Source: Schmidtea polychroa (taxonomy: Eukaryota). Taken from it: a DNA stretch of 64,000 nt. The notes under the pieces are model-generated. The model made no database searches. It was not told the origin of the DNA and saw only the letters and a program-made list of their open reading frames with translations. Shown piece after piece: positions 9,473 to 64,000 of the stretch; position 1 is the stretch's first letter, and every line of letters begins with the position of its first letter. The position numbers were made by a program, and so were the translations under genes. Location: the NCBI GenBank assembly GCA_044892525.1, contig CM097885.1, forward strand, positions 267,840,001-267,904,000, given 5' to 3'.

Positions 9473-12232
9473 ATTATTATTATTATTATTATTATTATAA
9501 TTATTATTAGATGACAGTAGTTGGCCATGCACCAGAAGAGGCTATAAATGGAAACCGGAAGACACATATAAATCATTTGATGTTGCATATCTATATTTGC
9601 ACGATCTAAATCATGATTTCGATACAAATTCCAATGGCTATTCAGTCACAGAAGTCATAAACAAAATAATATGAATAAAGCGTATTTACGAAGAGAAAAT
9701 CTTGAGATCATAATGGAAGAGTTAGGGTTGAAATATTTTTAACATGTGAAAACAGATGGGTAAACTGGTGACGGGGTAACCTTAAATGGGGTTGGGAAAT
9801 AACATTTAAAGGCCGATTGAGGATGATAACAATTGAATATGCGTTAGCTTAGATACCTTCATCTAGACAGGTGCAATATACAAATATAACTTAGATCTTT
9901 AGAAACCTTTATAGTTTATATTAGATGTCATATATTAGGGTCATATATTAGGGTCATATATTAGGGTCATATATTAGGGTCATATATTAGGGTCATATAT
10001 TAGGGTCATATATTAGGGTCATATATTAGGGTCATATATTAGATGTCATATATTAGGGTCATATATTAGATGTCATATATTAGGGTCATATATTAGGGTC
10101 ATATATTAGGGTCATATATTAGGGTCATATATTAGGGTCATATATTAGGGTCATATATTAGGGTCATATATTAGGGTCATATATTAGATGTCATATATTA
10201 GGGTCATATATTAGGGTCATATATTAGGGTCATATATTAGGGTCATATATTAGGGTCATATATTAGGGTCATATATTAGGGTCATATATTAGGGTCATAT
10301 ATTAGGGTCATATATTAGATGTCATATTTTAGGGTCATATATTAGGGTCATATATTAGGGTCATATATTAGGGTCATATATTAGGGTCATATATTAGATG
10401 TCATATATTAGGGTCATATATTAGGGTCATATATTAGGGTCATATATTAGGGTCATATATTAGGGTCATATATTAGGGTCATATATTAGGGTCATATATT
10501 AGGGTCATATATTAGGGTCATATATTAGGGTCATATATTAGGGTCATATATTAGGGTCATATATTAGGGTCATATATTAGATGTCATATATTAGGGTCAT
10601 ATATTAGGGTCATATATTAGGGTCATATATTAGGGTCATATATTAGGGTCATATATTAGATGTCATATATTAGGGTCATATATTAGGGTCATATATTAGG
10701 GCCATATATTAGGATAAATTATTAGGATCATTATTTATTCATCTATATTGTTTACAGTATCAGAAAATTACATCCTCCGAGAAATACTCCGATAATGGGG
10801 CAGCTTTACCTGAAGGTGTTCCAAATTTTGTGAGATATCAACACAATAAGATCGCCCAAATATGGATAAAATATAATGAGAAACTCCATTTATCCCAAAT
10901 CAGCTGTGTCGTGCAAAACCACGCCGGAATCATTCGGAAAACCATACAAATATCTATAGATAGTAAGTTCAAATACTTGATACTTTGATATTCTTTTTCT
11001 TTCAAAGTTCTCTTATATTATTTAATTGATATTTCATTGCTACATTCTTTCTCACGACTTGTTTTCTTTTTATATTGAATGTCTGCTTGACATGGTCACC
11101 AGTGTTATTCCATGCATTAATATGACCTCCTCCAGTCTTGTCATCATTAATATGAAATTGTTTATGCTTTACATCTTTACTCTTTTCCTTTTCCTTTAGA
11201 CCTCGTTTTCAAGGAATCTCCTCCTCTAGATTATTCAATTGTGCTCGGTGAAAGTTTCGCATTGAATTGTACTGCCAAAACAAACAACATTCAATTGAAA
11301 ACAAATTGGTTTAATGTAGGTAAGTGACGCTATGAACCGAATGAGGCAAATAATAAATGAGGTTTAGATTCACAGAATAATGTTGCAGTCAATTCAACAG
11401 TCGAATCAAGGATCCATCAACTGCCAAACGGAACATTGGTTGTGAGGAACATTGAATTGACGGATCCACACAATTTCATGTGTATTATCAAGTCAACGAT
11501 CAGCAAAGATGAAATCAGTAAAGTAGTGAAGATTGCAATTAAAGGTTATAAGGATTTATTTAATTATTATTTATTAATTATTATTGGTCTTGATGGAGGC
11601 TGCATGGTAATATTATATCAGCCTTTGATACTATCATACTTTATATATTGATGAANNNNNNNNNNNNNNNNNNNNNNNNNNNNNNNNNNNNNNNNNNNNN
11701 NNNNNNNNNNNNNNNNNNNNNNNNNNNNNNNNNNNNNNNNNNNNNNNNNNNNNNNNNNNNNNNNNNNNNNNNNNNNNNNNNNNNNNNNNNNNNNNNNNNN
11801 NNNNNNNNNNNACGATTAATTTAGACAGTTTTCCTGTCATCATCAGGTGGGATATAATACTCATTAAATAAAGGATTTTAAACAAATTTAATTATATATA
11901 AAAAATTTTTTTATTTTATAAAAAATATTATTTTTTAAAACTTTAACATTTAAAATTTAATTTAATAATTTAAAAATTTAAAAAATTTTTTTATTAATTA
12001 TTTAATTTAACACAACAATCAATACATACAATACACAAAAGCTTATTTAAAAACACTTATTAAATGTTAAAGTTTTAAAAAATAATATTTTTTATAAAAT
12101 AAAAAAATTTTTTATATATAATTAAATTTGTTTAAAATCCTTTATTTAGTGAGTATTATATCCCACCTGTTGATGACAGGAAAACTGTCGAAATTAATCG
12201 TGAAAAAAATGTTTGATTGGCGTTATCTTATA

Positions 12233-12301
<69 letters not shown>

Positions 12302-15300: not shown

Positions 15301-18300
15301 NNNNNNNNNNNNNNNNNNNNNNNNNNNNNNNNNNNNNNNNNNNNNNNNNNNNNNNNNNNNNNNNNNNNNNNNNNNNNNNNNNNNNNNNNNNNNNNNNNNN
15401 NNNNNNNNNNNNNNNNNNNNNNNNNNNNNNNNNNNNNNNNNNNNNNNNNNNNNNNNNNNNNNNNNNNNNNNNNNNNNNNNNNNNNNNNNNNNNNNNNNNN
15501 NNNNNNNNNNNNNNNNNNNNNNNNNNNNNNNNNNNNNNNNNNNNNNNNNNNNNNNNNNNNNNNNNNNNNNNNNNNNNNNNNNNNNNNNNNNNNNNNNNNN
15601 NNNNNNNNNNNNNNNNNNNNNNNNNNNNNNNNNNNNNNNNNNNNNNNNNNNNNNNNNNNNNNNNNNNNNNNNNNCACATCTCCAAGACTTCTGACATTGT
15701 CGGCCACTGGCTTTATAATTAGTAATAAAGGGATGCAGGACATTGTTGCGGTGGTACTGTTGAAGTAGGTGTATACAAGTTGTAAGTTTTTATCTTCTCT
15801 GCATCGGTTAGCGTATATGGGATAGAATAGGTAGCGCTTAACCATTTGAATCAATAGTCTTCTCACTGTTTCTTTATCACTATCAATGCCTCAGAAATTT
15901 GTCTTCTTCTGACCCGTGGATCTTCATTAAAAAAGCTTGTAGTTCCTTCTCCATATCGTATGATGGCCGTACACTGAGTGGCTTATCTTCAGCGGCTTAT
16001 CTACCCAGTCGGAGCATATTATGAGGCAAACTTTTTTGAATTTTGTCAGTCCTTTCTTGCAGTTGTAATAAATGATTTTTCTAATATCCTCTCGAGAAAA
16101 CACGCTAAACATTAATGATTATACAAATTATTCATTCAAATTAAATATTTTATAATTAACTATATTTATAAGGTTTGAAGAAGTCTAATGTTTGTTGATT
16201 TTCCTTTTATATTCATTTTCTGTCTTTTCATTGGTTCGATTAAACATTAATTTTGAAATCTAATTTAAATCAAATATAAAATGTAAGAAAATTACCTCTT
16301 TTTAGCAAAAAATTTTAAAAAGTAATGACTTTAACTATTATTTAATCTTTATTTTAATTTTTATTCCTAGAATTTCCTAAATTTTTTAATTACTTAAATA
16401 AAATAAAATTATAATTATTTATTTTTTAAAACTTCCTCAACCGGACCTTAGCCATAATTGGACCATAACCGTACCTTAACCGGACCATAACCGGCCCTTT
16501 ACCGAACCTAACTGGACCATAATCGAACCATAACCTGACCATAATTGGACCATAACCTGACAATAACCGGACCATAACCTGACCATAACCGGACCATAAC
16601 CTGACCATAACCGGACCATAACCGTACCTTAACCGGACCATAACCGGCCCTTTACCGAACCTAACTGGACCATAATCGAACCATAACCTGACCATAATTG
16701 GACCATAACCTGACAATAACCGGACCATAACCTGACCATAACCGGACCATAACCTGACCATAACCGGACCATAACCCCACCTTAACCGGACCATAACCGG
16801 AATTACAATAAGGAAATGCATATTTTGTTGAAAGTTCTGAAGAATAACAATAATAATATTTTCGAACTCTTGATAAGTGGGTTGGAGACAAGTTTGAACT
16901 CGATTTCCAAATCAAGAAAGTTATAAGTGTATAACTATTGCCCTTATCACTAGATCTATTTGACTTACTGCTAGAGATTGCTTCAACATATCTCCAGAGA
17001 TGCGTGTGACAATCTCAATTCTACGGTTGATTGGTTTTGAAATGATAAGAGTTTTAATTTAATTATTCATATGTAACTATTCTTATTCCAGTCATCGGGT
17101 AAAGAAAAGTTGCATAAACGTTCCAGAATCAACCCTGGAAATCACCGCAACCGAGTTATTAACGTTCACAAAATACGCATTTCGAGTCATTCTAGTCAAT
17201 AACGTCGGGTTCAGTCCTGCCCAGTATGTTGCGATCCGGACTTTGGAAGACAGTAATTAATATGATTTGGCAATTCCGTTTATTGGGATTCAATTATAGA
17301 GCCAGAGGGGTCACCAACTGATGTTTCATGTACACCGACAGCTAATTATTTACAGTTGGGATGGAATGTGCCAAATCATACTGTAACGAATGGGGTCGTA
17401 TCTGGGTATGAAGTTACCTATTTCAGTGATGACAATCACGAGGAGCCTGATAAAATGATGAAAATTGCGAATGAAGCTAAACTGAAACTATATAATCTAT
17501 CAGCAAATTCCAAATACATCATTCAGATTCGAATAAAAAATAATATAGGATTAGGGCCTCCCTCTGAGCCGATAAATTGCACTACAATGGAAGCTGCGCC
17601 CGATGCACCGAGTAAACCATTACAAAACTTTCATTATACGCTAATACTCATATTTCTAGATGAAATAAAGGCATATCATAATGGCGAAAGTATTAAAGTT
17701 TCATGGACTCCTCCCATAAAGGCAAATGGAAATATTCAACATTATTGGATAGCATTTAGCTTTGCACCTAAGGATAGACACGAGGTACATGTACAAGGAA
17801 ATAATAAGCCTTATTATTGGAAGGAAATAACTAGTAAGATTTATTTTTGTTCACTGTCTGAATACAAAATAAAGTAATTTTCATATTTTTGATTAATATC
17901 AGTATTATATGTGGCGAGGGATAAATGTACTGACAGGGCAGTCTAGAATTCTACCTTAAATTTACCTATTTGATCATTGGTTTACTGGTTATATTGGTTT
18001 CAATAAGTTTTCACCGCAATGTATTATACTACACGTCTATAAATAGTAACATGCAATTGAGGTGCAATAGCCATACAAACTTTGATTGGATGTGTACATG
18101 ATGATGTATTACAGATTCAATATGAGCGATCGATTCGATTGAATGCTGACATGCATAGTTAATACACTTACACAATCTATTATTAGTTACATGCAATAGA
18201 CACGCAAGAATAACGTACAAGAATACAATAATCTTTTAGAAACTTTTACACTGAATACTGATGAACTAAAAATATGTTGAGAAATATAAAAGAATTCAAT

Positions 18301-21300: not shown

Positions 21301-24300
21301 ACACATTTATTGAAATATTTAAATAGCATATATAAGTGGTTATTGGAGGCTTTATTTAGAATATTTTCAAATATTTTATTAGGCTTCCTAGTGTTTCCTA
21401 TTAGGGTTTCCTAGTGACTCGAGCTTTCTACTAGCTGATTAATTAATTTATTTTTACGCTATAACTTCCGCTCACTAAGTTATTATTATTATTATTATTA
21501 CTGATCTTCTCCAATTAATATTATTTTTCAAATTTTATAAATTTCTAATTAATTTTTGCACTTTTGTCATTTTGATATCTTTATTGATTTTATTTGTGTT
21601 TCAATTTTTACTTTGTGCATTTCTACATTACCCCAACCATTTTCATGAATTTGCAAACCTTTCTCAATAAACAATTATGGTTGGGCCTCTATTCGTGTCA
21701 ATTGTTTAATACCTGTTGATAGTTTTATTCTCCTAACTCTTTTCTTGTTCAAATATCATACCATCCTTTATTGGTCAATTCTTTATCATTTAGTTCCGCG
21801 AAAACCTTACATTGAAATCACCAAAGTCTCAACAGATCACATTGCTCTGTTGTGGCGATCGAATGGATCGCAGAAAACCGATGATCCAATCAATCAGTTC
21901 CTCGTCATCATACAAAAGGCATATGATAGGTCATCGAGGGAATTGAAAGTTGCAAGTAACATTCGTTCCATCATCATTGCAAATCTTGAATGCGGTACCC
22001 TCTACAATGTATATTTGTATGCTAAAAATATTGCTGGGAGAAGTGATCCGGCTATAATTCAGGCACAAACCCGCGGCTCAAGTAAGTATTGTGCCTCTAG
22101 ATATTGATACAAGTATTATATCTTTAGTACCCGAAATTCCTGACACGTCTAATATCGTAGCTGAAATCGGTCCCCATTCAATGTGTTTTAATTTGAGAGC
22201 TTTCCGACCAGGCCGGGGCTGCCCAGCCAATAAATATCTATTGAAACTGCAGCCGTCAAGTGAAGGTAGTCATCAAGAAAGTGCAGTCTTAGTTACAAAA
22301 GTTGTAAATGATAGTGATCTCAATCCAAATTCTGTATTCACCATTTATTATTATTGGTATTATTTGATCCTGTTATTCTAGTGTTTCAACGTTACTGACC
22401 TCCACCCGAATACCGATTACATATACACAATAGAAGCATCAAATATGGTTGGTTCACAAAACGCCAAAGACCACAATAAAACTCTACAAATAATTTCAAG
22501 TATATTAAGGTCTCAATCATATTTATGATTTCCTTTCCTTTTAGCAGTTCCACCTAATATCAACTACAGCTCACCTTCACTAGGAGGCGAGTTTAAATAT
22601 ATCTTCGTTGTAGTAGGGATTTCTGTAATAATGTTGGTTGTCATAGTTGTCGTTCTCGCACTTTACTGTACAAGGAAGTCGTATCAAACCTGTCTTGGAA
22701 ATAGGAGTATCAGTAATAAACTTGTCAGACCTCCTCCAACGATACAGTCCCCAATATCAGTCTCCAATAATAGGAACCGAAAGTAGTACTGAATTTAAAA
22801 TTTTTTTGTATTAATTGTCATTTAGGTTACCAACACCTCCAGATAATAATTTCTACGATAAAGGCACTAATGAAATAGTCTCCAAACCCCAGGATAATGA
22901 AGAAGACGGTAAATGCTTTATTTTTTTATTATACACTCAAACGGCGAAAAGTGTTCAACATATGAAGGTTTTTTTATTTTATTAAAACAACTTCACTACT
23001 TTTTACATTATTAATTTGATTATAACAGTCACTAAATGATAGCATCGAGTTAAGTATAAATAGAAACGCCAAATCCAATATATATGTATACACACAAACT
23101 CACTGTCATCGTCAGGTAGAATTGAAATTCAAACTAAATCAATCTAAATTGATCTTTATTAAACCATCTAATTCATTAAGTCTTTTTTTAAATATAATTT
23201 TGCTAAAAAATCATAAAATTCTGTTTTTTCAATTCATACTTTCAAAATTCACAAAAGTTGAAATCAAACAGCATTAAAATAAATTTTTCACAAAATTGTG
23301 TTTACTAATATTAATCAATTGCTTGATGCGACAGTTATCCAGAACATGAGAACGGAGATGAGGGCCAATCATTCCAATGTATGTAGCATTGCACACATGA
23401 CATTCATAACCAAGATCTGAATACAATCTAAGCAAAAACCGAAATAGACAAACTTCACAATTTATATCACACAGCCAATCCGATCATTGATTGTTTTTAT
23501 TTCATTGATTGTCTACATCTCTTCACCAATTCTAAAGGGCTTCCATTGAGTATTGGAGGAAACCAAATATAACTTGCAAATTGCTTACAACACTCACTAA
23601 ATGATGGCATCGATATAAATATAAGCAAAAACGCCAAATCGAGGCGGCTGTGGAAATATTTTGGATTTGGCTTATATTTTTACTTATATTATTAATTTGA
23701 TTAAACATTTTAATATAAAAAATAGGCAGATGTCATTTGAAAAGCCGCTTGAATCTGATTGGTTATAAAATAATGATTATTGAAATTAAATGTAAAAATC
23801 ATCAAATCAACAGAGCAATCTCAAATTATTAAAAGTTAAAACTTCATAATGCGATAAAATACTTTTGTCTTCTTCTTTCTTCATTAACTGATTCTTTCCC
23901 ATTAGCCATCAATATCTAATGTTTATACTTCCTGAATTATATCCTTCATGGATGCCACCTTGATTATATCCTCTTCTTTCCTTTCATTGAACCTTACAAT
24001 GACATGATTTGAAATATTGGTTGTTGTTGTTGTTGATGATGATGTCTATAATTTCATTATATTTTATCATATGTCTTGTTTCAATTCTAGAAATGTTAAC
24101 GCCCTATGCTACCTATGAATCTATTCCTAAACCAGATCCTATGACTAATAGGATTAATAGGATTACAAACTATAATACTGGAAGCCAGGCTCACTCGTAT
24201 CAGTATCCAGAGATACTGCCACCAGAGCCTTCTATACCGAAAATCATGAACTATCAGAATGATTTAAAGCCTCTCTTAAGTCATTCGACAAAACCGCTGA

Positions 24301-25029
24301 ATAGACAATACGACAAAGGCTATTCAAAAGGCAGTGAATCTTTAGCCACCTTGAGGCCTCAGACTGTAAGATCAGAAGCTTTGGCGACTAGCAGCAAACA
24401 GAGAAATCTCCCAGTTATATCCTTAGAATCTGAGGCTTACAGGCCTGGTTCTAGTGTATGTTCCAGTAACACTGGAAGTTCGAATATGGACGAGCTTAGT
24501 CAATTTTTTCGAAATCCTTCTGGAAATCGATTTGCCAGTAGATTACAAGAGCAAGATGAAGATGGTGCGTCAACAGCTAGAGGAGGCAACCGAAGCACCC
24601 TTATTAACAGGTCACACCATCACAACAATAATACCTTATCCGATGATTCCACACAGCCAGAATCGTATTGTGAATCTGGGTCGAGTGGGGATGATTGTGG
24701 AATCAGAATGTTCACTCAAGATCCACCTGGGCAGCAAGGTAGGTTTCTAATTCAATGTGTATGATATATGGGATTGTTCATTCCTTTCAGTGATAGCACC
24801 GCAAACGATCCGCAACATGAATATGAGATGCAATTCATTACCATATGACACAGCTAACAGGCAGCCATTTATCCAGCAATCTAATAATTTTACCCTTCAA
24901 CAGCCAAGGTGACTCCTAGATTATAATATCATTTATCTCATTTTCATCCTTTCATTTAGAAATCCTTTGCACGAAGAAGATGAAGGTGAAGAAGCAAACA
25001 ATTATACTAATAACTTCGTGGTGGTGTAA
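1..25029 (+). CDS. Dscam: Dscam-family Ig/FN3 cell-adhesion receptor, 5'-partial, multi-exon
   Basis: Manual splicing gives phase-consistent GT-AG exons: <1-265, 5587-5831, 6565-6762, 6813-7002, 9188-9393, 10758-10962, 11200-11319, 11368-11544, <13804-13936, 13986-14136, 14189-14476, 14525-14741, 17092-17252, 17300-17611, 17660-17833, 20298-20393, 20438->20683, 21794-22081, 22128-22333, 22382-22499, 22545-22782, 22826-22908, 24091-24738, 24791-24908, 24960-25029. Domain order 6 Ig + 4 FN3 + Ig + 2 FN3 + TM matches DSCAM Ig4 onward. DSCAM-like motifs recognised from memory: WYLDD, RIHQLPNGTLVV, LECGTLY, GCP, PYAT. Continuity across two N gaps (before 13804 and after 20683) cannot be checked, and one frameshift is needed at 17359-17361. 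Confidence 0.9.
830..1743 (+). mobile_element. Degenerate Gypsy integrase remnant in Dscam intron
   Basis: Frameshifted reading DFCRPMKT..YLLVIIDEVSKYI aligns by eye with the integrase at 48673-48912 (GFCGPMKT..YILVIIDQLRKYI). Confidence 0.6.
2050..2250 (-). mobile_element. Possible Penelope-like GIY-YIG remnant
   Basis: Minus strand reads KVYIGQVKK*PQRSDSH, resembling the YIG..R..EH endonuclease motif. Short and heavily decayed. Confidence 0.3.
4088..4143. repeat. 9-bp C-rich tandem repeat (CCCTCCCCA)n
   Basis: About 6 units read directly from the sequence. Confidence 0.9.
5587..7002 (+). CDS. Dscam: Dscam exons, Ig5 and Ig6
   Basis: Exons 5587-5831, 6565-6762, 6813-7002 give IECKF..VAWYLDD..GGEYRAEVTNEYG and LRLKCYV..IEWFR..EDGRLFIIEKV..SGKYMC. 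50-nt intron at 6763-6812. Confidence 0.85.
7325..7495. repeat. A/T-only ~28-bp minisatellite
   Basis: Unit aataattaataattatttaataatattt repeated several times. Confidence 0.8.
9188..10962 (+). CDS. Dscam: Dscam exons, Ig7 (split by a satellite-containing intron)
   Basis: Exons 9188-9393 (NPPIM..LTC..WWEF) and 10758-10962 (..ISCVVQNHAG..IQISID), with matching phases. Confidence 0.75.
9917..10712 (+). repeat. 13-bp TTAGGG-containing satellite, array 1
   Basis: Unit TATATTAGGGTCA, about 60 copies, with occasional TTAGATG variants. Confidence 0.97.
11200..11544 (+). CDS. Dscam: Dscam exons, Ig8
   Basis: LGESFALNCTA..W / RIHQLPNGTLVVRNI..FMC. 48-nt intron at 11320-11367. Confidence 0.85.
11812..12203. 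repeat. ~140-bp inverted repeat of a Penelope-type terminal sequence with degenerate hammerhead cores
   Basis: 11812-11952 is the near-perfect reverse complement of 12061-12201, with a 108-nt spacer. The left arm abuts an N gap. Confidence 0.85.
13804..14741 (+). CDS. Dscam: Dscam exons, Ig9, FN3-1 and first half of FN3-2
   Basis: LNCTVYGDDELNVKW..SGEYKCVASN; ISWNPP..GYLVSW..LRPFKEYDIVIAAQNAVG; KLKWEAP. Three introns of 48-52 nt. Confidence 0.9.
15680..16110 (-). mobile_element. Penelope-like GIY-YIG C-terminal remnant
   Basis: Frameshifted GHHTIWRRNYKL / NEDPRVRRRQISEALIVIKN resembles the H..IDW...KIL..E....R.I.EAI.I tail of PLE endonucleases. Confidence 0.5.
16438..16800. repeat. 11-bp repeat (ACCATAACCGG/ACCATAACCTG) with 153-bp higher-order duplication
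   Basis: Block gtaccttaaccggaccataaccggccctttaccgaacc occurs at 16471 and again at 16624. Confidence 0.9.
17092..17833 (+). CDS. Dscam: Dscam exons, end of FN3-2, FN3-3, start of FN3-4
   Basis: LLTFTKYAFRV..NNVG; PEGSPTDV..WNVP..GVVSGYEVTY..LSANSKYIIQI; VSWTPP. Requires removal of one G at 17359-17361. Confidence 0.8.
18328..19910 (+). repeat. 13-bp TTAGGG-containing satellite, array 2
   Basis: Same unit as array 1, about 120 copies, with more variants (TCAGGG, TCATGG, TTAGAG, TTAGAT). Confidence 0.97.
20298..20683 (+). CDS. Dscam: Dscam exons, end of FN3-4 and Ig10
   Basis: VSAVTTMEGPS; ILSFSQSIVV..LDCEV..YQW..NGSLFI..DQGIYKC. The exon runs into an N gap. Confidence 0.85.
20850..21182 (+). 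mobile_element. Penelope-like element, GIY-YIG endonuclease 3' fragment
   Basis: NIVYCITCNVCNEIYIGSTLRTLHQRVKEH..RFKEAILI..QPKIN, the PLE GIY-YIG domain with its CxxC/H motif. The 5' side is lost in a gap. Confidence 0.85.
21794..22908 (+). CDS. Dscam: Dscam exons, FN3-5, FN3-6, transmembrane helix, juxtamembrane tail
   Basis: LECGTLYNVYLYAKNIAG; GRGCPANKY..LHPNTDYIYTIEASN; TM YIFVVVGISVIMLVVIVVVLALYC followed by TRKS. Four introns of 43-48 nt. NAGNAG acceptor (tagcag) at 22542-22547. Confidence 0.9.
23100..23600 (-). mobile_element. Penelope-like remnant (GIY-YIG start plus partial hammerhead)
   Basis: Minus strand reads DLGYECHVCNATYIGM. Downstream on the same strand is CTGACGA-T-GACAG (plus 23101-23118), the 5' half of the motif at 62011. 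Confidence 0.5.
24091..25029 (+). CDS. Dscam: Dscam exons, cytoplasmic tail
   Basis: Exons 24091-24738 (EMLTPYATYESIP..), 24791-24908 and 24960-25029, ending RNPLHEEDEGEEANNYTNNFVVV* (TAA 25027-25029). Confidence 0.8.
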
Positions 25030-25455: not shown

Positions 25456-28400
25456 ATGTCATTTTTGAAGATTCTTAGAACCGAGTTGGATTTAACTGGC
25501 GACCACGCCGAAAATCAGAACATCAATGCAATTTCGAAATCTACAAAATCACTAATGGAATACCTAACGAAATTATGCCTAGACATGCTCACACATAACA
25601 TCAGACGATATGATGGACGAGGTTTAAAAGAAGCCAAAGAATGGATCAGGGATATGGAAGTATGGCTGCTGTCACTTTCGATGTGTTATTAGTGACAGAA
25701 GCAAAGACATTGTGGGGAAACGTCAGAGAAACAGAAACAACAGATATGAAAGCCAATGCGTGGTTCTTGCAATCGTTCACAATTACAAAATCAATAACTG
25801 ACAAAATCACAGAATTGGCAGCTATGGAACAGGAAGATGATGAAAGGTTTGCAGTTTTTGAGATACGACTAAGGAAAGTTGTAAATTCAGGACGAACAGA
25901 AGAAGATATTGTTCAAGACCTCATCGCAAATAAAGCACGCGATGCGAGACTGAAGGAGATACTACTGACGAAACCAGAGCCAAAAATCGAAGAAACGAGA
26001 TCATTGGCGAAAACTTTTGAAAGTAACAAAAATGGAAACAATAATACGGAATTTATTAAAGCAATCGGTCAAGGAAGATACATTAGCGTGACTGAGGGAG
26101 GGCAGATGAGAAATCAAAAGAATACCCAAGATACCATACCTACATCACCACAAAGAAGACTATCAGAAGAGTGATTTAGTCACCAAAGATCAAGAAGAGA
26201 CAAACATCCTATACACGGACCAATACAATACGAAGGAAATAACCATTGTCGTCAATAACAATCTCCAAGAGAACAATTTTTTAGAAATGCGAGAATCCTG
26301 AATAGCTCAGAAAGGAAGCTGCCAACAATATCCATGAAGAATATAGCAAGGAGGCTGTACAATGAAAGTAGAGGACTACCACAAGCATTGATCCCAAAAA
26401 TAACTGTAGTTGATTGTTTTTGCTGTGGCGAAAGGGGACACAGAAGGTATTAGTGTCCACTGGGAAATGTCTGATAGGTGGCAAGGGAATACACATGGGT
26501 TTCGAGATTATTTTTCGTTACGGAAAGAGGTTCCACACCGATATCAAAGAATAGCGTGCATATAAGAAGAAGATTCAAAATCTGAAAGAAGAGACTGCTC
26601 ACAGCGACATGGAAGATAAATGTCCCTGAGAAATATACCGTATTGAGAGAAGACGAATAAAACATCATCGACTCGATGAGTTTCATTTTGTCGGCGGAGT
26701 CAACAGTAAATTGTGAAAGAAGAAATTAACGGCAAAAAGATGAGGCAGACGAAGAGATGTACCAGACGGAAGATGGAAGAAATTGGAGTAAAATAATGTT
26801 GAATAATGCCGAAGCAGAGATGTTATGGGACTCTGGAGCATCAGTAACAGGCATGAGCAAGATTTTGTGGGAGAAAATAGGCAAACCAGAACTTCAAGGT
26901 AGTATGATATTATTATGCGGAGTCTTTTCAACTGGAGGTGAAGAAGCAATGGGATACATGACTATACCGGCTACATGGAATCAGAAGACCAAACTAATCA
27001 CAGCAGTACTGGTAAAAGAGATCAAACCCGAATTCATAGGGGGCATTGATACAATGAAAGAGTTTGGAATAAAGTTAGTGAAAATCAATAATATAGAAAC
27101 GTCATTGATAAACAAAATCTACACTGATGAAGAAAGAATAAATAAAGCACTGGTGGAGATGGCAGGTGAGAATAGTAAAGATATTGAAGGAATGATCAGG
27201 GAATATGGCGGAATTTTTATGGCATCGAAATTTGATCTGGGATTTTCAAACTTAGTTCGAAATGAAATGCGGATAACAGGAGGCCCAATGATACAACATC
27301 CTCAACGTCAACCAATGCACATGGAGAAAAGGATTGATGAGCTGATAAAAGAGTTAATGAAAGCAAATGTTATTCGGTGTTGCAAGAGTCCTTGGAATGC
27401 CCCGTTAGTGATTGTAGGGAAGAAAAATGGATCCATCAGAAAGTGTGTAGATTATTGAATTCCATAACAGTAAAGGAGTCTGTCTCGGGAATGCAAAAAT
27501 ATTTTCGTCAATCAATTTAGGTCAGGCGTATTATCAAGTGGAGTTGGCTCCAGAAATTCAAAAAATGACTGCATTCAGTACAAGAGAAGGACAATTTTGC
27601 TTCAATAGACTACCGTTTGGCTTAGCAACAGCCCCTGCGACATTCCAGAGACTGATGCACACAGTGCTAGAAGGAATGCTATTCAAGGGAGTAGTAGTTT
27701 ATCTAGATGATATCTTGATATATGGTAAAAGTCAAAAAGACCACGATGAAGAATTCAAATGGCAGGACTGAAGATAAACCCAGAAATATGCAAATTCAAT
27801 AAAACAGAATTGTTTCCTTGGTTACATAGTTAATGAGAAGGGTATCCAGACAAACAGGAAAAAAGTGGAAGAGATCGAGAAAGCAGAAGGACCAAAATGT
27901 TCAAAACAATTGAGATTTTTTCTCGTATTAACGAACTGCTATACAAGATTCATCAAAGACAATGCCAAAATCGCCGAACCATTATACCCTGCAATATCTG
28001 GATGCGATAAAGATATAAATTGGACCAAAGAATGCAACGAGAGCTTCCAAACTCTGAAGAGACGGTTGTGCGAAGCACCTATCCTTGATTTTCCAAGAGA
28101 AGATAGGACTTTTATCCTAGACACAGACGCTAGTTTCGGAGCCATTGGTGCAGTTTTGAGTCAAATTACAGAAGATGGAGAAGAATCGGTCATAGCTTAT
28201 GGCTCAAGACATATGTTATCACCTGAAAAGGGATACTGTCTAACCAGGAAGGAGCTGCTCGCCGTACATGAATACGTCATGCATTTTAGAGAATATCTGT
28301 ACGGAAAAAAAATTCATAATTCGCACCGAACACAAAGTATTAGTTTTCATGAACACTTCAAAAACGCCAATCAGTCCGCAGTTCCAAACGTGGTTAGCTA

Positions 28401-28540
28401 ACCTGTCGGAATATGATTTTGAACTAAAATATCGGAAAGGTGAAGAACACACGAATGCAGATGGACTATCAAGATTAAAAAGTATGATTTGCACCCAGTG
28501 TCAAACAAGACATGAAGAAGCTAAGGAAGAAAAATCAAAG
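25456..28540 (+). mobile_element. Ty3/Gypsy LTR retrotransposon, defective gag-PR-RT-RNase H, no integrase
   Basis: Gag with CFCCGERGH knuckle; protease MLWDSGAS; RT SPWNAP, LPFGLATAPATFQ, YLDDILI; RNase H LDTDAS..ELLAV..ADGLSR. Many stops and frameshifts. Ends at a (TA)n tract. Confidence 0.92.
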
Positions 28541-30097: not shown

Positions 30098-32939
30098 CAG
30101 GGCCGTGCCTGACCGGCGTTCATTACGTGCGCCGCACGCATGCGGCCAAATTAAAAGGCGGCCTGACGACCAGAAAAACAAAAAAAAATTAAAAAGCAAA
30201 ATAACAATGTTAATATATAGTCATAGTCATATATAATCGAAGTAAATTGTCAAATAGTTGAGTGTTGTTGTCAATTCGTCAATTGTTATCATTATCATTG
30301 CGCTCTATGGCGTACTAAATTTTTTTTAGCTGCGCCTATCACAGAATATTATTCTGTGCGCTTATTGGCGAGCGCATGCTGGCGCAGTGGCCGCATAGAA
30401 CTCCGTGATGTAAGAATAAAGAGAGATGAACACTCTTTTTAACCCACGATGAACAGAGTACATCTCTCTTTATTCTAACTGATTTTAACCTTACTGAGTT
30501 CTACGGGTTCTACACGCCAGCATGAGCTCACATGCGCTCGGCATAGACCATATCAGAATCAAGTGAAAAGTGCAAATTCATCTTTCACGTGCGTTCAGTT
30601 GCTCTACCTGGCTCTAGGTAAGTTGGGAGCGTGTGTGTGTGTGTTATAATATGTGATTTACCTGTCTGTCTATAACACGGCAAGCGTCTCAGCTGCGTGG
30701 CAATAAAACCTTATTCAAACTCGGAAAGCGCTTGGGCAGATTCCCTCACCGCCTCACCCAGCGCTTTGTTACAAAAGGTTGAAAAAGGTAATGAATTTAA
30801 TTCTATATTAAATTAATTTCAATATAAATCCTTACTGATATTTTTAAACATTTTAGTAAAAGGCCTAAGAATGACTGGAAAAAAAACGAAAAGATTGTCT
30901 GGAGCACAGTATAAAAGAAAGCGAGAAGAAAAACAACATGTTGCTAAAAAAATCTTTGGTTCACTAACCAAATATTTGGAAAAACCTCCAGAAATGCAAA
31001 ATGCTTGCAGTAGCCAAGCAAATCCAAGCAGTGAATTTTTTTCCAATGAAAATGAATTATCTGCCGAAAATACAAATGATAATGACAATATTAGTAGTAA
31101 TGATGAAATAGGAGATATTGCAGTTACAAATATCGACGATATCACTGAAATTGATGAAGAATATTTTGCTATGTGTATAGAACTAAACGATCCAGCTTGC
31201 TGGCCTTTAACACTTACCAATAAAATGCTGGATATTTTAATTGAAAAATGCCCTTTTCAAAATATACAATCTACATATTCACTAAATGAATTTGGAAGAT
31301 CATTTTCAAAGGTTTATTTCTATAGAAAACTGCCAAATGGTGAAAAATTTAATCATGAGTGGTTAATCTATTCTCCAAAAAATGATGGCACATTTTGCTT
31401 CTGTTGTAAATTATTTGGCAAACAAGAAATAAAATTGGTTAATGAAGGCTTCAACGATTGGCAACACATATCTGACAACTTATCTCGTCACGAAAAAACA
31501 TCACTGCACATCGAAAATTGCATCTGTTGGAAAAAATTAGAATTAAATTTAAAAAGAAAAACTACAATTGATAAGAATATGCAACGGTATTATGACGCCG
31601 AGAAAAAACGATGGTGTCAAATTGTCAGGCGCATGATATCTGTGATACAATTTCTAGCAGGACAGTGTTTAGCTTTTAGAGGTTCTTCCAGCAAATTGTA
31701 CGAAAAAAATAATGGAAATTTTCTGAAAGTATTTGAAATGATAGGAAAATTTGATGATATAATGGCAGACCACATAAAACGCGTACAAGAACCAATCGCT
31801 TTAAAGAACCACATGCCACATTACCTGGGAAATCGCTTTCAAAATGAAATAATCACTATCCTTGCAACCCAAATTCAAAACATCAATAAAAGAGGCAAAA
31901 TATTTTTCAGTCATTTTTGACTGTACGCCGGACACTGGACATGTCGAGTAAATTACAATGATTATTAGGTATGTACATATTAAAATTATGAAGTTGAAGT
32001 AAGAGAAAATTTCATGGGCTTTTATCAAGCTGAAAAATGTACTGGAGAATTTTTTTACGACTTCTTTGAACTTTGTAAAGCACTTGAATCAGAACCGGAT
32101 TTTCCTGCTGAAATTAGTGTACGTCGCCGACATCACCGAAAACAATTTAGCTATGAAGGAGATGAAGATATTCAATTTACTCTAAAAGAACATTTTCAAA
32201 TTAATTTTTTCTATGTAATACTAGATACAGCTATTTCATCTTTTACCACCCGTTTTGAAACTTTGTCAAATTTCGAACAATGTTTTGGATTTCTATACAT
32301 ATTTATTGATTTGGGACATGAGGAAATAAAAAAAAGTTGTTTCGATCTCCATAATAAATTTAAAGATGGTGAATCTTGTGATATCAGTGACGTAGAATTA
32401 TATCAAGAAATAATTTCTCTAAAAATTATCATAAAAGACAGAAAGCAGCCCGAAGAACTCATAAAGTTTTTATACAAATACAACTTGGAGACTTCTTTTT
32501 CAAATGTCGCCACAAGTTTAAAACTTTTACTGACAGTTCCAGTATCTGTTGCATCTGGAGAGCGAAGTTTTTCAAAATTAATAATAATCAAAAACTACCT
32601 GAGAACTTCAATGACTCAAGAACGTCTCAGTAATATATAAATTATTGAAATTGAAAGTGAAATTGCTGATTACTTAAATATTGAAGGGGCGATTGAAGAA
32701 TTTGCCTCTAAAAATCGCGTAGAGTAAATTTTTTTTTTAAATATCATAGATTTATAGATGTGCCAAAACATAATAATGTTTTATATTCAATGGTAATATG
32801 TACATGTACATTAGATATATAAGTATAATAATAAACATTAAGAATGAAAATTTGATTTTTTTCTTTGATTTTGATGTTATCTCAAAGGGCGGCGATGCAT
32901 ACTAGCACGCAGGCGGCCATATACCCAAGCACGGCTCTG
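30098..32939 (+). mobile_element. hAT DNA transposon (ZMYM1/TTF-zinc-finger type), internally deleted
   Basis: TIRs CAGGGCCGTGC / GCACGGCTCTG and perfect 8-bp TSD CCTGTCAG (30090-30097, 32940-32947). Transposase 30871-~32730 with FCFCCKLF, DCTPD and SGERSFSKL motifs, a frameshift, a stop, and a missing central segment. Confidence 0.95.
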
Positions 32940-34021: not shown

Positions 34022-36815
34022 CAGAGCCGGATTAAACTTTTGTAGGCCTGTTGAACTGTAGTGTAGGGCCCTTAGATGCTTGCAGAAACATATAATTGTA
34101 TATGGGTATAATTGTTAATCGCCTTTTACATTGTTGTTTTTAATTAAAATTTTAAATGCGTAATAAGTTTACATATATAAAGTACTAATATGTTTACGAA
34201 ATATAATTGCATTTTTAATGCCAAAGAATATTAACCTAATTCAATTTTAATTAACATTCAATTGGGGCGCATACTAGGCTACACTTACCCGTCCTATGTT
34301 GTGCATAATGTTAAAAATCTCGACGACGCGACTTAATTGCTGAGAAAGAGTCAATGATATCCTGAAAGTCAAGGCTTTGGACGATTTCGTATTCAATATC
34401 CATCAGTGTTAAGCTACTTAATCTCTCTTGAGCCAGGGTTGATCTCACAGCATTTTAATGCGTTTGAGTTGAATGAAGGAGCGTTCGCCGCTGCAGTTAG
34501 AAACCGGCAAAGTTAGATAAATGCGCAAAGCGACATACACATTTACAAATCCTGTCTGAAGATTCAATTCATTCAAAAGTTTCAACATTTCAAGTGGTGT
34601 TTTCTTTGTCGGTAATGATCGCATTTCTTTTAGAAAAGTTCTCCACTGAATCCACTCATCACAGAGTTCATCAGTGACATCATCAGAGTAGAATTCCACA
34701 AACAATTTCAAAGATTCCCTTGTTGCAGTGCTGTTTTCATCATCCGCATATAAAAAATAACAACGATCGTCGATTGCTTTATATGCTGCAATTCTACGGT
34801 TAAGATCGGTAACAAGTGAATCAATTATAACATAATAGGTATCAACTTTGAACTTCTCTTCACCTGTTAAAACAACAGCTGACTCTTTGCTATCGTCCGC
34901 TCTGCGTTTTGGTTGACGTGCGCGTCTTGTTTTGAATTTCTTTTCAGAGCACAATTCTGCCGCGCTATCTCGATAAAATGCAAACTTATTCCTCTGAGAT
35001 ACTAGAAATTCCAATAATGACTTCAGTAATCCTACTGCAGTGCACAGATCCATTTTTTCTGATTGCAACAGCTGGCTTATATCATTTATGCGTTCCAGAA
35101 TGGTATTCCAAAAACACACCAAGAACACTGTTTCCAACTTATCTATGACATTCATTAAATTTGTTGCTTCTGATCTCGTTTATTTCTTTTGCAAACTGTT
35201 GCTGCCAATTTCTTGCAAAACAGATTGGTAGGTTTTATAGTGCTGATACATACTTCGTAGTGCAATAGCATGAGCATACCACCGCGTGTCACTCAAACGT
35301 TTTGGAAGTAATGCAGACTTTGACTTATCCGTTCCGATTACCTTTCCCTGACAGCATTTTTGACAAGATTCCATCTATATGTCGAATCAGACAAGAAAAC
35401 ATAAATTTTCTGAACAAATCCGAAAAATGCAACTGCCTCAGTGCAAGCGTCAACAGCTGCAACCCCAGACTGATTCAGTGAGTGTGCCATACAAGGAATA
35501 TAGGACACCGTTTTTATGATTTCAATTATACGCGCGTGTACACCAGAATATTGTCCAGACATATTGCTGGCATTGTCGTATGTCTGACCTCTGCAGTCAT
35601 TTAAATCAATATCAAGATCGCGAAAAGTTTCAAAAATTGTATCGAAGAGACGAAGACCGGTGTGTGACGAAATTTGAACAAATTTTAGAAAACGTTCAAC
35701 AGGTTGCCCATTACTTTTCACATAGCAAACCGTGAAAGTTAATTGATCTGTGTGTGACATATCAGGCGTAGAATCAACACTGAAGGAAAAGTACTTTGTC
35801 CTTTTTAATTCATCAATAATAGCTTTGGTGACTTTTCTGGTCATTAGACCCACAAATTCTTCATAATTGGTGAATGATAGGTATGATGTGATGCCACGTC
35901 CAGCATTTCCATATGTGTCAATATGTCCCGCAATAAATGAATCATATTCAGCTAAGTACTCCAAACAACCCAAAACGTTTCCATTATCTGCACTTCCAAA
36001 GGTTTCGGAAGATCCTCTGAGTGATAATCCACGAAATGTGAGGAATTTTATTATTGAAACCACTCTCTTTAAAACTTCTCTCCAATAATTTTTTTGCTTA
36101 TCAGCGTGCTCCCAAATTGATTTGTCCAAAGTCTGAACATTGGATATATACGTTGCATAAGTGGTTAGAGCGTATCTGTGATCAGCTGATTTTTCGTGTT
36201 GTTCAAGTTGATTTATGGTACTCCAGCTGTCAAATCCTGTAGTCGCAAGAGCAGACGAACTGTTTATCGAAAACAGTTTACATACAAAACAAAAAACGCA
36301 TCCAGATGATGGCGAATACCTTTGAATTTTTTCTCCATTGTCAGATTGTGAATAAAATGCTGAATCGTTCAGTTTTCTGTTACAATTGGCATATTTACTT
36401 AACGAATTTGCATAAACTCCATCACGGTTTGCACACACATTGGGCCCAACGTGGAGCCAATAATTCACAAGATTACTATCCAGTAGATCCCACGAGGCTG
36501 GATCAGTTACAGAAATAATATCATGTTTAGCAGTGTCAAACAAAGTTGGCCTATTTACGATTGATTCGGGCTGAATGATATTTAGTTGTTCTGATGAAGA
36601 AGTTATTTCATTAAAATCGTTTTCTTGCGGCGAAACATCTGTTGTAGATGAAATTTGTAGTAATTTCTCAGTATCAGCTAATTTTATTTCAACTGATTCA
36701 CTATAAGTTTCAGATCTTTTAACAAACTTATCGATTCCGCCACGTTGCAGTTCTGCCGCCTTTTCAAAAAGACGTTTCTTTTGGCGTTTTTTGCGCCAGA
36801 TTCAAATTTTTTCAT
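34022..36815 (-). mobile_element. hAT DNA transposon with frameshifted full-length transposase
   Basis: CDS ~36815 (MKKFESGA) to 34311 (..SRRRDF*) with CFVCKLF, DSTPD, YDNASNMSG, CMAHSLN, SDTRW and SGERSF motifs. Terminal CAGAGCCGGATTAA at 34022; the other TIR was not found. Confidence 0.9.
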
Positions 36816-60468: not shown

Positions 60469-60493
60469 TAATTAGAATAATAATTATAAAGAT

Positions 60494-61675
60494 TGTAAGG
60501 CGTTTAGATCTGAGAGTTAAATATTTCAATGATTTATTAAAATAATTTTTAAATTGAAAAGCGATTTTATTAAAGATAAATTTTAAATAAAGAAGTTTAT
60601 TAGTAAATAATTGTTAAATAAATATATTTTAAATATCGAAATTTTGAGAAATGGTTTTAAAAATATTTTATTCAAGGCTGAAAATTTGTTTGAAAATTAT
60701 ACAATATTTCATAAAATAAATACTTGGAATTATGACGTTATCATTTGAACCTGATTTAAAAAATAATTTAGAAGATGGTTTAGGCAGTTACATGTTTTAC
60801 ATTTGGAAGACAAGGACATGTAGTCGAATGTTATGCGTGTGGTACCCCGGGACACGTGAGAAGAGATTGTCAAAAAAATATGATGTACGAGATGTAGCTT
60901 GGGATGTCATAAAGAGGCAGATTGTTGCACAAATTTGGAGAGAATGAGATATCGGAGAATCAATGACATTTTTGGTAGACAACAAGAGCGATACGACGCA
61001 GGGAATGGTTATCAAGGAACAAGAAAGGATACAAGACAAGCAGACAAGAGATACGTAGCATGCATAGACGAATCAAGTGATGAAAGAATAGAAGATAAAC
61101 ATAGAGAATACCCAAATATCAACGCGCCGATAGAAGAGGAGATAGTCGGGGTAGTGCATTAAACAGCGATGTTGACTACCAAATTATTAATTATTATAAT
61201 AAAAGTAAAATATCATGTATTATAGAAAACGATGTGAAAGATGCAGAGTTAACGGAAGAGAAAAATAATGTAATAAGGAAAGTAAACAGACTCATAAAAA
61301 AGGATTTTGCAGAAAGAGAAAGAGAAAAAATACAAATACTCACATTAGTTATTATAATTTCTTAAAGAAGGGGGTTGTGAGGTGTTTTCAACTGAGAATT
61401 AAATATTTCAATGATTTATTAAGATAATTTTAAATGATAAATAATGGACTATTAAAATAATTTTTAAATAAAGAAGTTTTATTAGTAAATAATTGTTAAA
61501 TAAATATATTTTAAATAACGAAATTTTAATAAATGGTTTTGAAAATATTTTATTCAAGGCTGACAATTTGTTTGAAAATTATACAAATATTTCATTAAAT
61601 AAATACTTGGAATTATGACGCTAACATTTGAACCTAATTTAAAAAATAATTTAGAAAATGCTTTAGCAGCTTCTA
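60494..61675 (+). mobile_element. Miniature LTR retroelement (two ~300-bp LTRs, gag knuckle remnant, PPT)
   Basis: Direct repeats 60494-60792 (TGTAAGG..GTTACA) and 61376-61675 (TGTGAGG..). PPT AAAGAAGGGGG at 61364-61374 and CYACGTPGHVRRDC at 60829-60870. Confidence 0.85.
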
Positions 61676-62010
61676 ATAATGATGATAACTAATAAATAAT
61701 AAATAATATATAAATAATAAAATATTCATATTAATAATAATAGAAAATCGCCAATTAAGTATATTAAAATATAACATTGCTATATATTTCGATCGGTTAA
61801 CAGTCTCCTTCAGGCTAAAAATCGAATAAATAACAACTAAATGAAAATAATAATATTCAAACAAATTAAAAAATAATAATCGTAATCAAACTGTATCAAA
61901 AAGGTATTTTAATAAAATTTTAAAAAACATTTGAATTAATTATAAATTATATAAAATAAATAAAATTAATAAATTTGTTTAATATCCTCAATTTACATAG
62001 TTATTATATC

Positions 62011-62051
62011 TCACCTGATGATGACAGAAAAACTGTCGAAATATATCGTGA
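62011..62051 (+). ncRNA. Minimal type I hammerhead ribozyme motif (Penelope-associated)
   Basis: UCAC-CUGAUGA-U-GACAG-AAAAA-CUGUC-GAAA-UAUA-UC-GUGA. Core intact with a 1-nt insertion, predicted cleavage after 62047. Confidence 0.7.
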
Positions 62052-62166
62052 AAAGAATATTTGTTTTAATCATATAAAAATTATTTTAATTTTAAAAAAA
62101 CACAAAATTGTTAACAGTCTTAAAGAAAATTTTTTTAAAATTAATATAAATGGATGTTGAATACTC

Positions 62167-62553
62167 ATGATCCTTGCGCAGGTTTATCTAAAAGTAATGA
62201 TCCTATTTTTGATATTGAAGTTAATATGCTTTCAAGTTCAGAAGATGAAAAAATTCAGATCTAAGCACACTGATCACAAATATTTGTTGGGATTTCCTTA
62301 TTCTGAAGGTTTCAGAGAATTCAAGCATAAAATCCTTAAACATGTAGATAAGACTAAATTTAGGATTGTTTCAACGTCTTACAAGGTTAGTAGCATGTTT
62401 ACTAATAAGTTTCCAACTTCAGTTGGTCTGTCTTCAGAACTCGTGTATCAATTCACATATAATGGGTGTAATGCCACATACAGTGAAGAAACTGCCCGTC
62501 AGTTTTGCACTATCTTAAAGTCGAAAATATATTATTCGCACCAAAAGTCTTAA
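62167..62553 (+). mobile_element. Penelope-like element fragment (linker and start of GIY-YIG)
   Basis: LSSELVYQFTYNGCNATYSEETARQF, a degenerate LVY.F.C..CNA.YIGET.R motif. Confidence 0.7.
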
Positions 62554-62603
62554 ATTATCATTTAATAGCTTAAAATACTATTAATAATAATAATAATAAT
62601 AAT

Positions 62604-62642
<39 letters not shown>

Positions 62643-62993: not shown

Positions 62994-63066
<73 letters not shown>
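62994..63066. repeat. (TA)n microsatellite
   Basis: Read directly, with one interruption. Confidence 0.95.
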
Positions 63067-63071
<5 letters not shown>

Positions 63072-63108
63072 ACATTACAAGTTTTCTGATACCCAGTGCA
63101 AATCCCAG

Positions 63109-63148
63109 TAGTAGACTTGTTTCGAGCATTTGGCTCTCATCAGTACTA
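63109..63148 (-). ncRNA. Canonical type I hammerhead ribozyme motif
   Basis: UAGUA-CUGAUGA-GAGC-CAAAU-GCUC-GAAA-CAAG-UC-UACUA. All core nucleotides present, 5-bp stem I, 4-bp stem II, GUC cleavage triplet. Confidence 0.82.
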
Positions 63149-63358
63149 TGTAGGAGACGCGAAGATTCGACTCTACTGCATCCTTTACCTGCTACACTGG
63201 AAATCACATCACTTGCAAATTAGCTAAATCACAGAAAACAAATATCTGCAAACTTGTAAACATGGCGTGTGAAAAATCATATTCGCCTCTGGAGACACCG
63301 TCATACACAGTAACTGTTTACAAGTGCATCCGTAAACATTTAGCATTTTTAACTTGTA

Positions 63359-63445
63359 ATGGAGTAAAATATTTTTTTACGGATGTCTAACATTAAAATA
63401 GTATTATTTTAATGTTAGACATCCGTAAAAAATATTTTATTCCAT
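63359..63445. repeat. ~87-bp near-perfect palindrome
   Basis: Arms of ~41-42 nt around loop GTAT, with one bulged T and one mismatch. Confidence 0.9.
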
Positions 63446-64000
63446 ATATATATATATATATTAATTTTTTCAATATTAATTTTGATAACTGGTTTTAAAT
63501 TATTTATTTTAATAAATATATGAGTTGCGTTTAAAATTACTTAATTTATCAAATCATTTAATTTTCATCATACATATTCTGTCCATATATCTTGACAAAA
63601 CCAGGGCGGTATAACGTTTCCTAATGGGCTCTTGAAAGAAATTCCATACAAGAAACAATAATTTAATCACTTTCACATAAAAATTTGTCATAAGTAGAAT
63701 CAAAAATCGTTGTTTGAGTTTTACTATATAGATATATTGATATTACACTAGAAAATCTTGTGTTAATATAATTAATTATTATTATAAAGTTATTTATGGA
63801 AATTTTTTCAAAAACAAAAGATAAAAATAATTTATTAAAAAAAATATTTTGACTGGAATGACTCAACGCCTTGTGTGGTTGCACCGTTTGCACCGGGCTA
63901 CGTCCGGCCCTTGACCAATACATCCATTTATGATGGACCGTAATACTTATTTACCACTGTTTATATAAAACTGACACTACTTTTCCAGGTTATGCAGAAT

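Follow-up and report, generated by a model that had tools for sequence, protein, structure and literature searches.

A candidate solo retrozyme unit carrying a type-I hammerhead ribozyme motif near a Penelope-type hammerhead in the planarian Schmidtea polychroa

We analysed a stretch of 64,000 nucleotides (nt) from contig CM097885.1 of Schmidtea polychroa (assembly GCA_044892525.1, positions 267,840,001 to 267,904,000 of the forward strand), in which a minus-strand hammerhead ribozyme had been proposed by an initial annotation made from the sequence alone. The whole stretch is referred to as the window, and its first letter is position 1. Judged by its sequence, the motif at 63093-63161 is a well-formed type-I hammerhead with the canonical build of animal hammerheads. 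The surrounding segment of the minus strand, 63071-63443, is probably, if by no means certainly, a single unit from a non-autonomous retroelement that bears a hammerhead, that is, a solo non-LTR (long terminal repeat) retrozyme or, equivalently, a derivative resembling the pseudo-LTR of a Penelope-like element (PLE). We infer the insertion mode, the family membership and the weak activity of the unit. Most likely, it is a stray unit, standing alone, from an already known type of retroelement with a ribozyme, and not a new kind of element.

The hammerhead is composed of the following parts.

63093-63161, minus strand: type-I hammerhead motif, full extent (sequence reading, pattern match, descriptor scans and alignment to the Rfam model Hammerhead_HH9, below HH9)
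63143-63137, minus strand: core strand CUGAUGA, core positions 3-9 (sequence reading and pattern match)
63136-63133 and 63127-63124, minus strand: helix II, GAGC/GCUC, 4 bp (sequence, HH9 alignment and descriptor scan)
63132-63128, minus strand: loop 2, CAAAU, 5 nt (sequence, HH9 alignment and descriptor scan)
63123-63120, minus strand: GAAA, including GAA of the core (sequence reading)
63120-63115, minus strand: helix III, AC/GU (pairs A-U and C-G), enclosing the 2-nt loop AA (sequence reading)
63114, minus strand: cleavage-site C17, with the predicted cut at 63114/63113 (sequence reading)
63148-63144 and 63113-63109, minus strand: helix I, UAGUA/UACUA, 5 bp (sequence reading)
within 63093-63161, minus strand: closing helix past an asymmetric internal loop with UAC on its 5' side (sequence and HH9 alignment)

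All positions of the hammerhead core are present with zero deviation (CUGAUGA, GAAA, and a base other than G at the cleavage site, following a U). Three helices are arranged around the core and the ends exit via helix I, as is characteristic of type I. In these respects the initial annotation read the sequence accurately: the minus-strand core, the cut at 63114/63113, the CAAAU loop 2 and the extension of stem I through an internal loop are all present, and so is the (TA)n tract downstream of the cut, which begins 43 nt 3' of it. For the closing helix, two registers are possible, UCCU/GGGA or GUCUC/GGGAU, the latter being that of the Rfam alignment. The annotation's own caveat of a 2-bp stem III with a non-palindromic AA loop likewise agrees with the sequence. 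As a hairpin loop of 2 nt cannot form, helix III effectively amounts to 1 bp closed by a tetraloop. An alternative register in which ACUUGU of the 3' tail would contribute to a long helix III was rejected, since helix I would then not pair. Canonical metazoan hammerheads have been described as having a helix I of approximately 6 bp, a helix II of 4 bp and interacting loops (PMC4209133), together with a helix III of 1-2 bp that is capped by a usually palindromic loop of 2-4 nt and cleavage as dimers (PMC4209133; PMC6155905).

Two hammerhead loci were detected in the window by descriptor scan, the minus-strand motif and a plus-strand motif at 62015-62047. The strict form of the descriptor comprised at least 5 bp in helix I, at least 4 bp in helix II and at least 2 bp in helix III. 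As the null model, we used 3000 simulated windows generated by a first-order Markov process with the composition of the window. A motif as good as that on the minus strand occurred in one of the 3000, and seven passed the relaxed descriptor. The resulting rate for the strict descriptor, approximately 3e-4 per window, corresponds to a few chance motifs per genome of several hundred Mb; it therefore renders a chance origin of the motif unlikely, though conceivable genome-wide. We consider it quite unlikely that the motif arose by chance in an AT-rich genome of this size. Such an origin would be in line with the expected few chance motifs per large genome, with an HH9 score of just 18.2 bits (E = 0.7), with the single copy in the window and with the unremarkable minimum free energy (MFE) of the 73-nt hammerhead segment (z = -1.1). 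However, features outside the descriptor fit a hammerhead as well, namely the closing helix, the register of UAC, the A-rich loop 2 and a 152-nt domain folding at z = -3.1. In addition, a PLE-type hammerhead is located 1.1 kb away, the motif lies near a 3' end followed by a microsatellite, and both hammerhead families are known from the host phylum.

At gathering thresholds, Rfam yielded no match in the entire window. A covariance scan with the models Hammerhead_1, HH9 and HH10, which had been named as a check in the initial annotation, accordingly gave none at threshold, and the best score for the motif was obtained with HH9, the only hammerhead model to give a match at permissive E-values (18.2 bits, with an E-value of 0.7 in a search of 4 kb against all families; the gathering score is 52). 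The alignment to HH9 spans the full model (positions 1-77), and both UAC and the A-rich loop 2 fall into the model's own columns. The register of UAC to which the annotation had drawn attention is that of the helix I internal loop in HH9; the likeness to the Schistosoma Sm-alpha hammerhead found no support in the Rfam scores. The scores were calibrated with seven metagenome contigs that have the same core spacing, obtained by a DNA pattern scan and rescored in Rfam; all seven represent families unrelated to the motif and serve for calibration only. Of these, the environmental hammerhead L007 alone passes Hammerhead_1 (39.2 bits versus 34), and three convincing environmental hammerheads reach just 22.1-31.4 bits on HH9. 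Since the environmental look-alikes are mostly below threshold, missing the Rfam threshold is usual for a build with a short helix III. Animal hammerheads that look genuine but have a very short helix III thus score far below the Rfam thresholds, and scans relying on thresholds only overlook them.

Environmental hammerheads with this core spacing were found both as single and as tandem copies. Contigs L003 and L004 each carry two type-I hammerheads at a spacing of approximately 550 bp, and L007 carries two at a spacing of 375 bp; they are tandem units of eukaryotic origin that resemble retrozymes. A hammerhead pattern scan of prokaryotic genomes and viral contigs gave no match.

HH9 (RF02275) represents hammerheads residing in introns of amniotes. 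Like the minus-strand motif, it has a helix II of 4 bp, an A-rich loop 2 and UAC in the internal loop of helix I. It differs in that helix III of the motif is five positions shorter and loop 2 one base shorter, that helix I of the motif has one mismatched pair at its outer end, and that host and context are unrelated. As HH9 is the best Rfam match over the full model and the motif occurs once in the window, a domesticated, cis-acting hammerhead that trims or regulates a host RNA, like the intronic HH9 and HH10 of amniotes, was considered. We regard this as extremely unlikely: the score is 18.2 bits versus the gathering score of 52, no host exon was identified within several kb, a weak helix III lacking a partner argues against efficient cleavage in cis, and neither conservation nor transcripts provide evidence for it.

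The sequence around the hammerhead is organised as follows.

63071-63443, minus strand: candidate inserted unit, 373 bp, 34.9% GC, with putative boundaries set by (TA)n
62994-63070, no strand assigned: (TA)n microsatellite adjoining the 3' end of the unit
63444-63461, no strand assigned: (TA)n tract adjoining the 5' end of the unit
63072-63223, minus strand: structured domain, 152 nt (MFE -46.0 versus a shuffle mean of -34.6, z = -3.1)
63362-63443, minus strand: near-perfect AT-rich palindrome at the 5' end of the unit, with a stem of approximately 38 bp and a 4-nt loop (MFE -40.0, z = -14.6)

The two (TA)n tracts, at 62994-63070 and 63444-63461, read as a single microsatellite that would have been split by an insertion. 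Within the window, which has a GC content of approximately 30%, there are four loci with at least eight TA repeats, and the probability that two of them bracket the motif at a distance of 373 bp by chance is roughly 0.05. The hammerhead is positioned near the 3' end of the unit, its cut site lying 43 nt before the 3' (TA)n, and the unit contains no open reading frame (ORF) of note. The predicted fold of the whole unit is strongly self-paired (-125.4 kcal/mol versus a shuffle mean of -78.4; z = -10.9). In the 152-nt domain, imperfect inverted repeats on either side of the hammerhead lengthen helix I into a long stem. The palindrome at 63362-63443 may be a foldback made at insertion. It gave weak, sub-threshold Rfam matches to two microRNA families, and part of its arm (CATCCGTAAA) is found again at 63327-63336. 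Neither the unit nor the motif recurred in the window in an exact-seed repeat search, with BLASTN at a word size of 9 or with nhmmer with filters off. The initial annotation's remark that the window holds no tandem partner was borne out by the same searches; the window extends 557 bp beyond the 5' end of the unit, where (TA)n bounds it.

Several features of the surrounding sequence relate the unit to PLEs.

61906-62091, plus strand: Penelope-type unit with a hammerhead at 62011-62051 (descriptor match 62015-62047), approximately 1.1 kb from the minus-strand hammerhead
62167-62553, plus strand: ORF of 128 aa beyond the Penelope-type hammerhead, ending at (TAA)n 62582-62641
11812-11953 and 12060-12201, inverted relative to each other: pair of units of the 61906-62091 type, 98% complementary and 106 bp apart

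The hammerhead at 62011-62051 has an intact core, a bulged U preceding a 5-bp helix II, a helix I of 4 bp and a helix III of 1 bp with a palindromic tetraloop, in agreement with the published description of flatworm PLE motifs. A different motif of Penelope type at 1.1 kb had already been pointed out in the initial annotation; it was confirmed at 62015-62047 on the plus strand, and its flanks show no similarity to those of the minus-strand hammerhead. From their sequences, the two are members of different families. The second half of the ORF at 62167-62553 resembles, by eye, the junction between the reverse transcriptase (RT) and the GIY-YIG endonuclease of PLEs together with the first endonuclease motif; a comparison with Pfam gave no match. 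The ORF is probably a truncated and decayed PLE fragment. In the inverted pair at 11812-12201, the ribozymes are situated at the outer ends, and each has one substitution in the conserved core. The left copy (11812-11953) abuts a masked run of N. In the right copy, the Penelope-type motif (12166-12200) is followed by approximately 27 nt and then by (TTA)n at 12228-12300, so that in this copy (12060-12201), as in the minus-strand unit, the ribozyme is followed by a short tail and a microsatellite. Two direct copies of approximately 295 bp (60493-60783 and 61375-61666), which precede the Penelope-type unit at 61906-62091 closely, are about 89% identical and spaced by 882 bp; the short ORFs between them gave no Pfam match.

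Given this neighbourhood, the unit might simply be part of the adjacent Penelope-like insertion, that is, the pseudo-LTR end of a truncated and inverted PLE copy belonging to a second PLE family. A PLE-type hammerhead and an ORF resembling the endonuclease junction lie at 61906-62553 (plus strand), in a tail-to-tail arrangement relative to the unit. Integration of PLEs often produces complex arrays, tandem or inverted, and both pairs of hammerheads on opposite strands 100-700 bp apart and inverted truncated copies have been described for them. The window itself contains an inverted pair of the minimal type at 11812-12201, and canonical hammerheads occur in some PLEs (Selaginella, Hydra clade). 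We nevertheless hold this explanation to be unlikely: the two hammerheads are built differently and have flanks without similarity, two different microsatellites and 340 bp of unrelated sequence lie between them, and neither the unit nor the sequence upstream of it has a remnant of RT or endonuclease coding sequence on the minus strand.

The properties of the unit were compared with those of described ribozyme-bearing elements. Canonical animal hammerheads are found in non-coding tandem repeats of 150-450 bp known as non-LTR retrozymes; PLEs have been proposed to mobilise retrozymes (PMC7761336). Retrozyme families akin to PLE pseudo-LTRs, with solo monomers dispersed along chromosomes, were reported recently (Li, Clavereau and Pollet 2026 preprint, 10.64898/2026.07.22.740005). 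Like the non-LTR retrozymes of metazoa (Cervera and de la Pena 2020, PMC7229834), the unit consists of a few hundred bp of non-coding sequence with a canonical type-I hammerhead, a low GC content (34.9%, the range given for retrozymes being below 45-50%) and a strongly self-paired predicted RNA. Co-occurrence with PLEs, seen in the window at 62015-62047 and at about 11.8-12.2 kb, and solo monomers beside arrays are likewise known from these retrozymes. The loop of helix III, in contrast to theirs, is not self-complementary. PLEs carry a hammerhead near the 3' end and inverted structures on the 5' side, and they favour microsatellite targets including (TA)n (Craig et al. 2021, PMC8557442); those of the Perere-10 clade have been reported in Schmidtea (PMC3846280). 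With the hammerheads of PLE pseudo-LTRs (Cervera and de la Pena 2014, PMC4209133; PMC8557442) the unit shares a type-I motif near its 3' end, a microsatellite as insertion site, an inverted or palindromic structure on the 5' side and an adjacent PLE fragment. The joined RT/GIY-YIG endonuclease ORF that characterises PLEs is absent from the minus strand in and next to the unit. In the literature searched, we found no description of a canonical hammerhead or a retrozyme in planarians.

The solo-retrozyme reading is based on the complete core with helices I and II, expected by chance approximately 3e-4 times per window; the full-length HH9 alignment, which matches the canonical metazoan build; the environmental hammerheads of equal core spacing, single as well as tandem; the (TA)n on both flanks and the distance of just 43 nt between ribozyme and 3' end; the like layout at the Penelope-type motif 12166-12200; the PLE-type hammerhead and the RT-endonuclease-like ORF 1.1 kb away, together with the PLEs reported in Schmidtea; the published association of retrozymes, solo monomers among them, with PLEs; and the low GC content of 34.9% with the strongly self-paired predicted fold, both of which are traits of retrozymes. 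The context points to the already described link between PLEs and retrozymes rather than to a short interspersed nuclear element (SINE) driven by RNA polymerase III (Pol III).

A SINE had been suggested by the initial annotation, in which the motif was classified as Schistosoma-type, its carrier as a candidate SINE/retrozyme-like element and its loop 2 compared with that of Sm-alpha. In an Sm-alpha-like Pol III SINE, a tRNA-derived head with A and B boxes would drive a dispersed ribozyme-carrying element. The B-box-like string on which the suggestion drew, AGTCGAATC, is indeed present at 63172-63164 (minus strand), 9 nt in length and approximately 20 nt upstream of the hammerhead. It is no better than a chance match, as the B-box consensus with the same three mismatches is matched 210 times in the window versus 224 expected; this test is indicative only. 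No tRNA-like sequence was found with ARAGORN, and no A-box-like match at a tRNA-like distance was seen on reading the sequence. We therefore rejected a tRNA-derived SINE head.

Sm-alpha and Sj-alpha of schistosomes (Ferbeyre et al. 1998; Laha et al. 2000, as cited in later papers) are described as SINE-like elements of approximately 335 bp with a type-I hammerhead, and schistosomes are flatworms too, so that host group, ribozyme type and a length of about 330-370 bp (373 bp for the unit) are comparable. The host is, however, a triclad planarian and thus of a different order, and the unit is flanked by (TA)n instead of an A-rich tail. Hammerhead_1 is not its best clan match, and no clan model reaches threshold (yet Hammerhead_1 does catch L007). 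The unit also lacks convincing Pol III boxes. Copies of Sm-alpha are reported to exceed 10,000 in S. mansoni; the 64-kb window holds one copy of the unit. Altogether, we consider a Pol III SINE of the Sm-alpha type very unlikely.

A number of observations weigh against the assignment of 63071-63443 to a solo retrozyme or PLE derivative. The unit occurs once in 64 kb, although mobile elements are defined by being repetitive, and a comparison of the translated ORF that crosses the ribozyme with 5.8 billion proteins revealed no candidate for further copies of the unit. Metazoan non-LTR retrozymes are recognised by at least two tandem units of approximately 150-450 bp, each with a hammerhead; the window has one unit. 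As (TA)n is common in AT-rich DNA, the flanks are suggestive at most (p roughly 0.05). Metazoan PLE motifs are usually minimal: helix III is missing, helix II is long and contains a bulged base, and the loops make no contact with each other. The motif studied here has the canonical helix II of 4 bp, a loop 2 rich in A and a helix I interrupted by an internal loop. Homology of the 373-bp unit with the Penelope-type unit was considered and rejected, since they share no sequence beyond the core. No model of the hammerhead clan attains its gathering score, and the motif has the lowest score among comparable motifs. Finally, the catalytic fold (-8.2 kcal/mol) is opposed by a competing fold at -15.7 kcal/mol that sequesters part of the core, and a homodimer formed through helix III is not stable (approximately 0 kcal/mol).

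The last two points bear on the predicted activity of this copy. Because its helix III loop is not self-complementary, homodimer formation gains about 0 kcal/mol from helix III, compared with -6.2 kcal/mol for L003 and -9.7 kcal/mol for L002, in which helix III is self-complementary. Poor cleavage is therefore predicted both for the motif alone and for the homodimer. The satellite hammerheads of newt and axolotl, which act as dimers, are similar in that helix III is 1-2 bp long and the monomer hence is a poor ribozyme; in contrast to the motif described here, their palindromic loops allow two copies to form a stable extended helix III. With one copy and a non-self-complementary loop, at most one inefficient cut per read-through transcript would take place, and no circle is expected. 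Little or no cleavage is thus expected at this locus, which on these predictions is best read as a dead-end offspring copy.

Alternatively, the unit could be the first example seen of a family of small hammerhead RNAs restricted to planarians, in which a non-self-complementary loop would be the normal state and not a sign of decay. We consider such a family unlikely. Cleavage within it would then depend on the pairing of two different unit variants or on the long helix-I stem of the 152-nt domain. The near-perfect palindrome at the 5' end, which suggests a young insertion, would be compatible with a family of this kind. If it existed, it would represent a variant way of controlling a type-I hammerhead within a retrozyme.

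For a solo retrozyme unit, the preferred explanation, we propose the following course of events. The unit would have been inserted into the (TA)n microsatellite by the RT and GIY-YIG endonuclease of an autonomous planarian PLE. According to the literature, units of such families are transcribed as tandem multimers, and at the family level the ribozyme would cut these transcripts into units, the monomers of which may be closed into circles by a host RNA ligase. Also according to the literature, hammerheads with a helix III as short as this one would act by the pairing of two copies into a double hammerhead. No new mechanism is opened by these observations, as ribozyme class, dimer requirement and retroelement context have all been described. 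If a census confirms the family, triclad planarians would join the animals that have canonical type-I hammerheads alongside PLEs, and the locus would offer a clear-cut case of a split (TA)n microsatellite with a ribozyme unit inside.

The remainder of the window contains the following features.

1-24764, plus strand: DSCAM homologue comprising exons for Ig and fn3 domains, a transmembrane segment and the cytoplasmic tail (comparison with Dugesia japonica)
25641-28401 (plus strand), 30871-32640 (plus strand) and 34445-36543 (minus strand): LTR-retrotransposon pol fragments with protease-like and RNase H domains, plus two transposase loci of the hAT/DUF4371 type that face opposite ways

The ORF at 24009-24764, which encodes the cytoplasmic tail, is 67% identical to DSCAM of Dugesia japonica, with the fn3 exons located upstream; this identity places the host among the triclad planarians, as a species distinct from D. 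japonica. The hammerhead is situated approximately 38 kb downstream of this tail exon, and no host exon is recognisable nearby. For the second hAT/DUF4371 locus, the best relative in the databases is a coelacanth protein (61%), in addition to a protein from a Logan contig (77%). At 16419-16812 (minus strand), a tandem array with a period of 11 bp reads as a repetitive ORF of 131 aa (repeats of the GYGPVMVRL type); this array is probably a minisatellite rather than a gene.

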